From the NCBI GenBank assembly GCA_904063045.1, contig CAJFCJ010000009.1, positions 2,622,631 to 2,686,630 of the forward strand: a DNA stretch of 64,000 nucleotides. Direction: 5' to 3'. Source of the DNA: Dimorphilus gyrociliatus. Taxonomy: Eukaryota; Animalia; Annelida. Shown here piece after piece: positions 8,801 to 15,273 of the stretch. How positions within the stretch are numbered: the stretch's first letter is position 1; each line of letters opens with the position of its first letter. The notes beneath the pieces were generated by a model. That model ran no database searches. It worked only from the letters and a program-made list of their open reading frames with translations, and was not told the origin of the DNA. The position numbers and the translations under genes were made by a program.

Positions 8801-11800
8801 GATAGCAACTGAATCTGTATAGTATCTATATAAAATTTCACAAAAAGATGTTGCTATTTATGAATGTGCAGATATATATATAGAAGACAAATTTCTTCAG
8901 CACGTTGATTTTTGAAATTGCGTTTGTAATTGTTATTGAAAGGAGGGGAATGCCTAGTAGTAGTCGTAGTGTAATAGGTCTAATTTGCTAAGTTGATTTA
9001 TATGAATATTCTTGAATTTGTAAGTGATAAATGTTTAAAGTATCTTAGTTTTACTTGTTTTCTGTCATTAAACTATCAATGATATATTAATTGAATATTG
9101 ACAGTTTCTATTCAAGGAATAGCCACGTTAGTTGATATAGGATACTTACCATATACGTACAAAGAGTGATTACTAATATATTGAAATTTATTCAACAGAT
9201 AATGAATACTCTAAACCTTCCATCTTTCACTTCAAACAAACATTTATTCTATTTAGTTCGTTTACCGACAGATGTCTCTTTACTTTTTTCAGTGTTTTAA
9301 ACTTGTAAAAACAAATACTGGATTTGAAAAAAAAGATGGAGTTTAATAGTTTCTATAAAATTATTAAAAATCAAAGAAAAACAACTGATAAATGTATATT
9401 ATTTATTAAAGAATAATTACAGAATAAAGGTATTTATAGTAGAAAGAAAAAAAATGACTTCAAATGTATATACGGTCAAAGTTTAATAATAGAAATATAG
9501 AAACATTAATGATGATAATTTGTAGGAAAGGTAAAAGATAGTTAAAAAAACATAAATGAAAACCTCTATATACTTTTTATATTTTCATCTATAAATAATT
9601 ATTTGAATGAAAGATAAAGCTACTCTTCTTATTTTGCTTTAAAAATGAGAATTTTAATATAGATTTGGTACTGAATTCTTATTTTATAGATTTAATTAGT
9701 ATATTTATTATATAGACTGTTGATGAGTTTTCATTAGTGAACAGAGAAGAAATCTTTCATTCAAGAATAATCAAGGAAGCACCATTTCAAAACTTTACCT
9801 TAATTGATAAGATACATCATAAAAATATGATAACATTCTACGAAAAGTACAGCTTAAGATGACATGGAGTGCTTTTATCAAATACTTACCTACGGCAATA
9901 AGCTGTAATTATTCTATATATAACATATCTATAAATTATTTCTCCGGATATTTTTATATACTATAAATAAAGAATATGGTTCTGAAATGATGCATTATGA
10001 TATTCTTATTAATTAAATATGATAACAACTAACTTAATGAAGAAATAATAATAGACTTACGGAGAAGGACGGAAATGAAAAGGGAGATAAAAATTTTTCT
10101 AATGAACTCGAATTAGACAAGGAGAGGAAACAGTTTGAAAGATATTAATTATATAGAAAGAATTGTGTAAATCCTCCAAGTAGATTAAACTTATGTAAAA
10201 GTTACTTCTCTTCCCCCTCTCTTTCTCTCTCTATCTCTCTCACACTTTCTGTCATTCCTAACGTATCAATCCAACAAGACAAAAATAACATTACTTAAAA
10301 AAGTCTAAAGCTCACTTAGGGCTAAATAACGAATTATGACGTACTTTCAGTTTGCCCATATATCTCTGCGTGTATATATATATTTGTATTTCTTTCTAAA
10401 ACATTATCATCATTCATTCATTCATTTATTCCATCGAAAACTCTTCATTTTTTGAAAATACCTCAAGTCAGGGACTTTGAGGAGTTTATCTCCAAATTGA
10501 TAAGAAGTATATGCTGTGTATAATATATCTCTTTAAAAGGAAAAGAACATAGCTGTAATATCTTAAAGTGTTTCTTAATAATCTACATATTTAGAAGAGA
10601 GGCAGGAGAGGCTCTTTTTTTATTATTCATTTATAAATTTATACACATTCTATTTATTCCTTAAACTATCCGCATTCGTCTAATGCCTCGTTTTTGTTAC
10701 TAAAAAAACATTGCATTAATGAGAGATTAAAATAGACTTTTCACATTAAATGGAAGGCGTCGCTTATATGAAAAAGTTAATAGCCTGAAATGAGAACAAT
10801 ACAGTATAAATAGGCTTAGAAACCTATGACGCCTTAAGAAAATAAGAAAATTTTCTTCGTAATCAAATTATTGGATAATAGCCACTAATTTATGTTTTAT
10901 GAACATATAATTTATGTAATAGAAGTACATCCGAATCTTATAAATAGCTTAGGTAGTAAATTTCAAAGGAGATAAAAGATTGTAAAGGAAAGAAACGTAA
11001 TTGAACAGACCAATTAAAAGGCAAAGAAGAAACTTCAAGCACTATTAATAGACTAATTTCTATCTTATATGTCTTAAAAACATAGACGCTATGTCCTCTA
11101 TATTTTTTACAAACAAGACAAATAAGGCAAAAAGTATTCTACTACAAAACGTCTATAAGTTTAAATACTCAATTAAAAATAGGTAAGAGCGTTTACAAAC
11201 AATAAACAAACAAGCAGATCTAACACAAATAAATAAGTACATAAACAGAAGAATTATAAATATAACACTTTATTCCATAGTTTCTTCCCTAATTCTTCCA
11301 ACAAATAGAACATTCTAATGTATACATTTGGATATTAAAGATTTCTCTTTTATGTTTCCGCAACACTTAAACATTTAGATATTATTTATAGAAGGAAAAA
11401 CTTTAGGTAGACTTTTTTTCTATTCTCCTTAATAACTTTCTTTTAAATACACTTTTCAATAGTCCTATGTACTTAAAAATAATAATAAAAAGTAACGCTT
11501 TTACCGATCAAATGAATTCAACTATTCGCCTATTTTCTTCTATGTCTTTTATTATTTATTGTTTAATGTTTTTTTTTTTCAGAAAAACAAAAAATGTATG
11601 TTTATTAATAGAATGCAAAAAAAAAACAAAGTTAAAAGGATATAATAGTAGATGAAGGTTATAAAAAAAGAGAGGGCGACTGTGGGTGGGATGAGGGGGA
11701 GGAAGTTGAAAAATATGTTTGTGAGAGAATGAAAAGTTAAAAGAAAGATAGCAATATGGCAAGAGTATTGAAAATTGTCTTTAACTTTACTTTTAAGATA

Positions 11801-11976
11801 ATAAATGTTGAGTAATTAACCCATAAACTACTAACAAGTATAGCAAATAGCGAAAAAGTTCGCCTTGTTTTGTCTTAAAGATATGTTATTTTTTACATAA
11901 ACAATTCAATAGAACAGTCATTTTATTAGAATTCGCTACAAATTGTGTTAATTTTTGTTGTGTAAATATAATTTTC

Positions 11977-13221
11977 TTATTGATTAAACCCCTCAGCTGT
12001 TATTGATAATTTATCATTGATAATCCGATCAATCTTATCACGAGTTTCATCGGCTTGACTTATCTTATCAATTGGAGTCCAACTTGAATCGTACTCGTAT
12101 CTATAAGCTCCGACATATTTATGTGGATTACTACTACCCCACTCCTGAAAGAAATAAGACACATAAGGGCGTGTGTAATGAAAAAATTATGCAAATAAGT
12201 CTAATAGCTCATTTGCATAGAGCTATAAATAATAGTAGAAAGAGTGATAGAACATCAGAACATCGTCAAGCATGTTTAAATTATTCTTCATTCTCCTTAT
12301 TTGCTCTTCAGCTCTACTTTTTACAAGTTGTGGTTAGTAAATAATTACTAATAATCTTTAATGTTAATCCTTTAAAAAATGTTCCATATATTACTAAACA
12401 CTGTAATAAATATGCCTTCTATAAGAGAGAATAATAAAATGGAAATTTGTTTTTTCTTTAAATTTTTAGAAACTTATTTCCAACAACAACCAGCGAAAAT
12501 GGACAGATTGAGGCGCAGATGGATTGATATTCGTCGAGCAGAAGCCCGACACATACTAAAATGTTTACAATCCGGTAATAAGGGCGATTGCAATTTCAGA
12601 GAAAAAATCTTTTGACCATTTCGAAAAGAAGAAAATTACCGTTGGTGAAACAATAGATAAGAAAGTTTTGTTATCCGCCCTTCTATAGACGTAGTATATG
12701 TTTCCTGGTTTCTTTATCAAGTTGCATTCGGCGTGGTTAAGGTCTGTGTCTCTTTTTGCTTCTTCTAATATCTAATAAATATAAATATATACATGTAATT
12801 TTAAAAAGTACTATATGTGTAAAAGTGAACCTTCTATTGAATAGAATGTTTTTTTTCTAAATAATTCTTAAATATCTTTGAAAACGTACCCTAAAAGCTT
12901 GTTCTTTCAAGTTATTCATTTGCTCTAATATAACCTGTAATTTTGTATTGACACTCATCTTCACCTTCGAATCGGACTGTATTTCGAGTTAAAGAAATCT
13001 TAATTAGAAATACTATTGAGGTGAGTATTAATGGTCAAACCTGCTGAATCTGATTCGCCAAATTTACTAAATCGTTCTCATCGTAAACCTTACGAACTTT
13101 TTCCCTACAAACCAATTGGAACTCCGCAACAGATTCACTTAGATTTCCTTAAGAAAAAAAGTAGTATTATAAGCATAGATTAATTAAATTCTTTACCAAT
13201 ACAACCTTTATCAGACTCCAT
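11977..13221 (-). CDS. C1orf50: C1orf50 homolog (DUF2452 family), 5 coding exons
   Basis: Exons: 13221-~13200, 13147-13041, 12976-12890, 12771-12640, 12144-11977. The joined protein contains [11 protein letters not shown]...TKLQVILEQ...[22 protein letters not shown]...[32 protein letters not shown], which matches C1orf50 motifs. Confidence 0.88.
12189..12231 (+). promoter_or_regulatory. Inverted pair of octamer (POU) sites plus TATA box upstream of the nested peptide gene
   Basis: ATGCAAAT at 12189-12196, ATTTGCAT at 12211-12218, TATAAATA at 12224-12231. An Inr-like TCAG lies at about 12255-12258, roughly 33 nt downstream of the TATA. Confidence 0.65.
12272..12615 (+). CDS. Novel 68-aa secreted peptide precursor, 2 exons, nested antisense in C1orf50 intron 4
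   Basis: Exon 1 (12272-12332) encodes signal [20 protein letters not shown] and has a GTTAGT donor in phase 1. The intron 12333-12469 ends TTTTTAG. Exon 2 (12470-12615) continues in frame as [48 protein letters not shown]. Confidence 0.72.
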
Positions 13222-13952
13222 TTTAATCGGCAAGTTCTTCGATAGTTAATTAACAAAACAAATAGCGAGATGATTCCTTTCTAACAAGTTATCTGGAATG
13301 GTATAACATGCGTGAAAGGTCAAGGTTGTTCGAAAATTAAACTTCTTCCGGTTACAAATAAAAACTGGTGTTTCTATACAAAATTGACATGTCTTAAAGA
13401 AGTTCGAAAAAGTGATAAAATCAGGTTTTACTAAGATAAAAATCTAAACCATGTTATAGGCAGAAAGAAGAAAATTATTATCAAATTGATGTATACTAAC
13501 TACGTATGAACGTCATAAAAAGGCTTTGAAAATGAAGAAGAAAATGTCTCCTAATAGTTTTCAAATAATCAAGTTACAAGGCTAAGAAAAATTATTATAA
13601 TAATAAAACTTTAATTAATAATAACTGGTTGAAACTACCTATCACGTGATAGTTTTCTTTTAACAGACAAACGTAATAGTACGTAAAATAGGTTGATCAG
13701 TTTCGAATGTTGTATTCTTCCATTGTTTTACGCCATTATCAAAAGCATTTGCTTGTAATATTAGATATGTTAAAGACTTTTAACTTGTATTTATTATATA
13801 TACAAAAATATATATTATTATAACATCTTTAACGCTTTATAATTAAAATAGTACTTCTTTATCTCCAATATCTCTATAACAATTTCCAATCTTTAGGGTA
13901 TTTTCGTATTATTGCTAGTATTACTTTTTTCTATCATAAATGTTGTATGTTC

Positions 13953-13978
<26 letters not shown>
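13953..13978. repeat. (GT)13 microsatellite
   Basis: Read directly from the sequence. Confidence 0.95.
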
Positions 13979-13986
<8 letters not shown>

Positions 13987-15273
13987 ACAACATACCATAT
14001 GTGTATACTAGATATTATCTGTGTAAGAGATAGATGACAAGTAAAATGATAGAACAATTGTAATTAACGGGGAAAATTTCCTTCATTTTTCTTCCCAAAG
14101 TTTATAAAAATATGAAAAGGCATACACTATACTATAGACATTTCTCTTATTCGCTGGTTAAAGTCGATAAAACAATTTTCTAGTAAATTTTATAATTAGA
14201 ATATATATATCTTTTATAAAAAGATTCCTTCCAAATTCTATAGCTTTCCATACACATTCTTAAAAATACATTAAAACAGTATACGTAGTTATGTAACATT
14301 TTTTAAATAGATTGTCTAGACTAATTCTATACGATAAAAAACGAAAAATGATAAAGTGTTATTCTATTTTTGTATTATTGATTGATTTTAGTTCAATTTT
14401 CGTACAGAACCTATTTTTATAAATAGTATAATAAGTAAAAAAGAAATAGAGATAGAAAGAGAGAGAAAAAAGAAAAGTATACTAATTGAATCATATTTCT
14501 AAAAATAGTCTATAGTCTAAGTTTTGGGAGTGGTACAAAATACATCGCAAAAAGAAAAGAATTCGACCTATTACTATTTCTTTATCATTCTAAAAAATTT
14601 TCCTGCTATAGGCCTTAAATATACAATGATTAATAAAAAAAAAAGTTGAAATTTTTGTGTATTTGTTAATTAAATGATAAAAGAATTAAAGAAAAATTCT
14701 ATATTATTATAATTGTAACGATTTTCCAATAGTTAAATTCCTCTTGAAATTTACGACGAATAGTTTGTTGAACTCTTCCAAATTGAAATGGCTTTCGTAC
14801 CGAAATAAAAGAGAAATCAATACGTTCATTTATCACTCTGTGCATAAAATCTAAAGTGTTCTCTTTGGCAAATTATATATCAAGTAATTTTATTTTAACA
14901 ACAATCATTATCATCTCCTTTGTCATTAAAATGCTTCCTTTAAATACATGTATAAATGCATATATATGCAATGTATAAATACTTTTCGCGTTACTATCTA
15001 TACAGCTGTTTCTTACTTAATTTTTAGTTTTGCATAATTTTAACTTTTAAACTTCTAAGATTTCACTTTAAAATTTATTTTGTTTAATAGAATGTAAATA
15101 TCTGATAACAGTGCAGCATTAAAAGTAATAAGCAATAAAAATAATCAAAATCTATCTATATAGATTTAATTGCCAAGTATACATACTACAATGCATACGC
15201 AAAAACTGAGATTTACTTAAATTTGTTATTCTTTTCTTCTTTTGCAAAACCGTATATTTCACTAATATCTAAT

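Follow-up and report, generated by a model that had tools for sequence, protein, structure and literature searches.

In the annelid Dimorphilus gyrociliatus, an intron of the C1orf50 gene carries on its opposite strand what we regard, with a probability of roughly 0.7, as a real, independently transcribed and spliced coding gene for a 68-residue secreted pre-pro-peptide. That the nested gene is real and coding is very probable. That its product is a secreted, convertase-processed, disulfide-looped peptide is a prediction from its sequence features and is probable. The gene lies in a 64,000-nucleotide stretch of genomic DNA, here called the window, and has one paralogue elsewhere in the same genome.

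The exons on either side of the host intron (Table 1) match consecutive parts of DUF2452 (PF10504), with 29.9 bits at 12720-12640 and 46.8 bits at 12144-11980 against a Pfam gathering cutoff of 25 bits; the stretch between them is therefore a true 495-nt host intron. RNA evidence was taken from contigs of two public runs from two studies, compared with positions 11000 to 14500; the contigs carry no strand. In one of these runs, X2 (organism A, 2017), the host gene was spliced with CT..AC ends at 12143/12639, 12771/12890, 12976/13041, and 13146/13205, which identifies the run as RNA-derived. The corresponding introns measure 495, 118, 64, and 58 nt. An earlier, sequence-only reading of this DNA had described one long C1orf50 intron among short ones, and the contigs agree with it. 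The median intron of D. gyrociliatus is 66 bp (PMC7854359).

Two features of the surrounding DNA were also recorded. A purine- and G-rich tract at 11640-11730 reaches a GC content of 0.50, with a GC skew of +0.85, in AT-rich surroundings; an X2 contig covering 11183-12143 suggests that it belongs to a long 3' untranslated region (UTR) of the host gene. A (TG/CA)n microsatellite occupies 13942-13992 and was excluded from the contig comparison as a repeat.

Table 1. Features of the nested gene and of its host gene (window positions)
Feature	Position	Strand	Basis and remarks
Host gene, last coding exon	11977..12144	-	DUF2452 profile positions 113-155, then stop; contigs
Host intron (DUF2452/C1orf50), 495 nt	12145..12639	-	X2 joint 12143/12639 with CT..AC ends; Pfam profile continuous across it
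TATA-type box TATAAATA (putative)	12224..12231	+	Read from the sequence; 48 nt upstream of the ATG
Inr-like TCAGA (putative)	12255-12259	+	Read from the sequence
Exon 1, coding part	12272..12332	+	ATG at 12272; Met, then 19 hydrophobic-leader residues with Cys as the last; base 1 of a Glu codon split by the intron
Nested-gene intron, 137 nt, phase 1, GT..AG	12333..12469	+	Donor GTTAGT at 12333; skipped in X1 and X2 contigs
Exon 2, coding part, 48 codons	12470..12615	+	Stop TGA at 12613-12615
R-L-R-R-R, furin/convertase-type multibasic site (cleavage predicted)	12505..12519	+	Alignment; R-S-R-R-R in the paralogue, then a conserved Trp in both
Two Cys codons with 8 residues between them (presumed disulfide loop)	12562..12591	+	Cys codons at 12562-12564 and 12589-12591
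3' UTR (probable), antisense over host exon	12616..12772	+	Unstranded contigs; host RNA may contribute
Host gene, coding exon	12640..12771	-	3' part matches DUF2452 profile positions 86-111
First AATAAA 3' of the stop codon (candidate signal)	12774..12779	+	Read from the sequence

All parts of the two-exon model proposed in the sequence-only reading (TATA box, Inr-like start, ATG, 20-residue hydrophobic leader, and phase-1 GT-AG intron) were recovered exactly where that reading had placed them. The 20-codon leader has a mean Kyte-Doolittle hydropathy of 2.04, and its end, with Thr at -3 and Cys at -1, fits the small-residue rule for signal peptide cleavage. The nested intron closes with a T-rich tract followed by the AG ending at 12469. 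The GC content is 0.40 to 0.48 in exon 2 versus 0.15 to 0.25 in the surrounding intron. When the host intron was shuffled (n = 3000), an open frame of at least 78 codons arose in 7% of the shuffles, and a loosely defined two-exon model with a leader arose in 0.4%.

Contigs of both runs contain a GT..AG joint at 12331/12469 that skips exactly 137 bases. In X2, it lies in a single 395-nt contig made up of 12137-12331 and 12469-12668. In X1 (a marine metatranscriptome, 2025), it lies in a 368-nt contig made up of 12268-12331 and 12469-12772, about 98% identical to the window. The same bases are skipped in two independent runs, which shows that the nested gene is transcribed and that its splicing follows the prediction. 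The check proposed earlier, a search for reads spanning the 12332/12470 junction, thus gave a positive result at the level of contigs, with the strand assigned by GT..AG polarity alone.

The ends of the transcript are less sharply drawn than its splice. The X2 contig begins at 12137, 8 nt inside the last coding exon of the host and short of the limit at which the assembly branches, and the X1 contig begins at 12268; a TATAAG stands at 12102-12107. Two places come into question for the start of transcription. One is near 12257, on the 3' side of the TATA box at 12224; the other is near 12137, and a start there would give the 5' leader short upstream ATGs, at 12178 and at 12189. At the other end, both contigs cross 12639/12640. 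The X2 contig extends to 12668, a branch point of the assembly graph, and the X1 contig runs without a break between 12469 and 12772, immediately before the first AATAAA; the 3' UTR therefore probably covers the entire host exon 12640-12771 in antisense. The outer limits of the contigs, 12137 and 12772, lie past both ends of the host intron, with host RNA possibly merged into these unstranded sequences. The earlier description of a gene hidden inside an intron accordingly holds for the coding sequence (12272-12615, +), which is contained in the host intron on the opposite strand. It would not hold for the transcript: since the contigs run on across the host exon, the gene as a whole is probably not wholly intronic.

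Independent support for the coding model came from the paralogue. A six-frame search of the species' own genome with exon 2 gave a single weak second match, on contig C24 (E = 0.08). This locus has a 20-codon leader, the donor G|GTAAGT at the same codon and in the same phase, a 249-nt intron, and a 57-codon second exon. When a profile built from both exons was searched against 1.84 billion representative proteins, a single strong match came back (E = 8e-33), a 77-amino-acid protein. This is DgyrCDS13318 (CAD5125077.1; UniRef A0A7I8WAB3), an annotated, uncharacterised protein of D. gyrociliatus, and its annotated splice is exactly the one inferred beforehand from the C24 locus. The leaders of the two genes are 45% identical, with ILLIC and the final Cys in common, and both end exactly at the exon boundary; that of the paralogue has Val at -3 and Cys at -1. 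The second exons align with a BLASTP E value of 3e-07 and about 36% identity, and they share MDRxRRRW[IV]DxR, LxCL, the second Cys, and an FRxK tail. The Cys residues are separated by 8 residues in the window gene and by 9 in the paralogue, a difference blurred by the gap placement of MAFFT. Two shared Arg codons differ synonymously (AGG/AGA and CGC/CGT). The paralogue differs from the window gene in its longer tail, in being annotated, and in its setting: it appears to be free-standing, at an unlinked locus where nothing points to a surrounding host gene, whereas the window gene is intronic.

These similarities bear on one alternative, namely that the transcript is a non-coding antisense RNA regulating the host gene and that its open frame is accidental. 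Such a role would suit a transcript lying antisense over a host coding exon. It would also accord with upstream ATGs preceding the main ATG, should the start be at 12137, and with a comparison with the close relative in X1 that reveals no excess of silent changes. However, an unlinked paralogue that shows no sign of a host gene nearby retains the protein features and the intron phase, with silent differences in Arg codons, and the composition of exon 2 is coding-like. We thus consider an accidental open frame very unlikely.

The window gene appears to be unannotated, because two protein searches failed to return its product even though its paralogue is in the collection. A word-indexed search with exon 2, which admits proteins of 26 to 82 amino acids, did not find it, and it was absent from the profile search of the 1.84 billion representatives. 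Neither gene is in the curated neuropeptide precursor list that the genome paper reports for D. gyrociliatus (PMC7854359, supplement). The novelty claimed earlier therefore stands for the protein sets searched and for this list. Likewise, the earlier failure to recognise a family was confirmed by the lack of any match to described families in Pfam, in the profile search, or in the species precursor list.

Homology searches were run exon by exon. Outside the D. gyrociliatus genome, neither the exon-2 word search nor the profile search of the representatives found a relative; three other profile matches consisted of several stretches within long proteins and were taken for low-complexity noise. 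Among JGI metagenome contigs, 467 matched the search pattern and none was confirmed. For both genes, Pfam gave no family above threshold, and the sequences of the PDB gave no usable match. The neighbours in the ESM Atlas contained nothing usable: those of the full paralogue were small prohormones, with scores of 0.77 to 0.83 that serve as leads only, and they disappeared once the leader was left out. A literature search for the paralogue's identifiers found no mention of them.

Within the species' own genome, no third member of the family emerged from protein and profile searches or from two DNA patterns. Two matches to RRRW[VI]DxR were set aside as chance, one (L006) at the N terminus of an SLC6-like transporter and the other (L007) in low-complexity sequence; a match to the leader-plus-donor pattern (L010) had the wrong spacing and an in-frame stop. 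A CHCH or twin Cx9C identity was also rejected, as the paralogue has one Cys pair only and scores 16.9 bits against a cutoff of 27.2, the window gene has Cx8C, and both genes have a hydrophobic leader. With two genes and nothing detectable elsewhere, the family would seem to be either young or fast evolving.

As for the product, secretion is predicted from hydropathy and the -3/-1 rule, and a leader conserved in the paralogue fits this prediction. The leader would be removed up to and including its conserved Cys at the exon boundary, and a convertase would then cut after the conserved RxRRR. The sequence-only reading had proposed a 25-residue mature peptide released at an RR four residues after this site. 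The alignments do not support that form: the only paralogue has RH at this place, and what both genes conserve is the R-x-R-R-R site with the Trp that follows it. The likelier mature form would therefore start at the Trp and comprise 31 residues, and a second cut at the non-conserved RR, giving the 25-residue form, is possible. In the same way, the precursor architecture described earlier survives in its signal-like leader, its multibasic sites, and its two-Cys ring, but not in the conservation of the RR as a cleavage site, and the C-x8-C ring is present here with a spacing that the paralogue shows not to be fixed.

The released peptide would form an amphipathic helix, a 10-residue loop closed by a disulfide, and a short tail, and it would act outside the cell. 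In AlphaFold2 models of modest confidence, a long helix extends to the first Cys, the Gly/Asn/Asp-rich ring makes a turn, and a short helix follows; the mean pLDDT was 72 with the window exon and 66 with that of the paralogue.

The X1 contig, from a relative about 98% identical, allowed variation within the peptide to be examined. Exon 2 differs at four positions (12553, 12556, 12580, and 12583), all of them first codon positions and all four amino acid changing, and the 157 nt 3' of the stop, mostly host coding exon, contain one difference. Ile-Leu becomes Leu-Ile, and Lys-Gly becomes Glu-Arg, the latter pair of changes (12580 and 12583) lying inside the ring. Four replacements out of four are often expected under neutral drift (P of about 0.41, not significant), so they do not establish purifying selection on the window copy. 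The four differences are paired, with neighbouring codons changed at their first base in each pair, which is odd for independent point changes. As read from the alignment, the changes in the ring speak against a tightly conserved ligand ring and would be easier to reconcile with a secreted product that evolves fast than with a conserved hormone.

What such a peptide does was considered from several sides. A neuropeptide or peptide hormone precursor would supply a processed, disulfide-looped peptide from neurons or endocrine cells that acts on a receptor, and its small size, signal-like leader, and conserved multibasic site are those expected of one; the prohormone neighbours of the paralogue are a lead in the same direction. 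About 1.6 kb downstream of the paralogue, on the same strand, there is also an open frame of at least 253 amino acids (L009:9242-10000 (+), G000:C24:985241-985999) that runs off the end of the locus and matches rhodopsin-family G-protein-coupled receptors (GPCRs; 7tm_1 at 33.8 bits and Srw-type at 34.2 bits). That a peptide gene adjoins a gene for a peptide-type receptor may be coincidence.

Several results weigh against such a precursor: the absence of both genes from the curated list, the lack of relatives in any other animal in the searches run, and the loss of prohormone-like neighbours when exon 2 is taken without the leader. In addition, the window peptide has no Gly as an amidation signal, its precursor contains no repeated copies, as many neuropeptide precursors do, and the ring varies in spacing between the paralogues and in residues even in the 98%-identical relative. 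Expression points the same way. In the 'adult vs juvenile' table of the genome paper, DgyrG13318 has a log2 fold change of +4.07 (adjusted p 8e-08; PMC7854359, supplement), where DgyrG13318 is assumed to be DgyrCDS13318 and a positive value to mean higher in adults. The paralogue would thus be about 17-fold higher in adult females than in juveniles, a late rise for a core neuropeptide. On balance, a neuropeptide or hormone is a tentative reading that we consider rather doubtful.

In the same supplementary xlsx file ('Supp Data 1'/'Supp Data 2'; PMC7854359), the sheet headed 'late vs early embryo' has about 1,870 rows and the one headed 'hatchling vs late embryo' about 8,341. These row counts suggest that, measured against the figure legend, the headings of the first two differential-expression sheets have been interchanged.

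Ring-type prohormones, such as elevenin, MCH, excitatory peptide, and whitnin, have the same plan as the window precursor: a leader, basic sites, and one disulfide ring in fewer than 100 residues. Nevertheless, Pfam, the profile search, and the species precursor list gave no sequence similarity to any of the four. Unlike precursors of the elevenin and MCH type, the window family has no amidation signal, no conserved ring, and no orthologues found in other animals.

A cationic host-defence peptide, in which an amphipathic helix and a C-terminal disulfide loop act on microbial membranes, was the other specific candidate. The family is restricted to this lineage, conservation of its leader and processing site goes with a variable mature part, and the differences from the close relative cluster in that mature part. 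The topology predicted is a helix plus a loop, and the product after the leader carries a computed net charge of +6, the value given in the sequence-only reading. However, once the conserved cut is made, the net charge falls to +3 for the 31 residues of the window peptide and to +2 for the 41 residues of the Trp-start form of the paralogue, and the hydrophobic moments of 0.42 and 0.32, respectively, are modest and weak for a membrane-active peptide. Nor was any similarity to known antimicrobial families found in the profile search, Pfam, or PDB sequences. The frog 'Rana box' peptides and thanatin resemble the window family in their conserved leader and processing site, variable mature part, and predicted amphipathic helix with a small disulfide loop. 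Compared with them, the window peptide would have a larger loop, a 7-residue tail after it, and a low charge, and it has no homology to them. A role in host defence is accordingly unlikely, and less probable than that of a neuropeptide or hormone.

Taken more broadly, the evidence leans slightly to a fast-evolving extracellular effector over a neuropeptide. A secreted effector of this kind, whether for defence, reproduction, or as a gland product, falls somewhat short of even odds; a signalling peptide and something else altogether each receive about the same lower weight. A more specific proposal is that the peptide is a lineage-specific dinophilid signal whose receptor is the Srw-like GPCR beside the paralogue and that, further or alternatively, the antisense overlap couples the expression of host and guest. 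We regard this as improbable.

The gene nested antisense to C1orf50 extends the gene set of a reference annelid genome valued for its compactness by a real, expressed member, and its presence explains the 495-nt length of this C1orf50 intron against a genome-wide median of 66 bp. The biological payoff would depend on the function of the peptide. The finding also links the new gene to an uncharacterised annotated protein, and the two together make up a two-gene orphan family of presumably secreted peptides.
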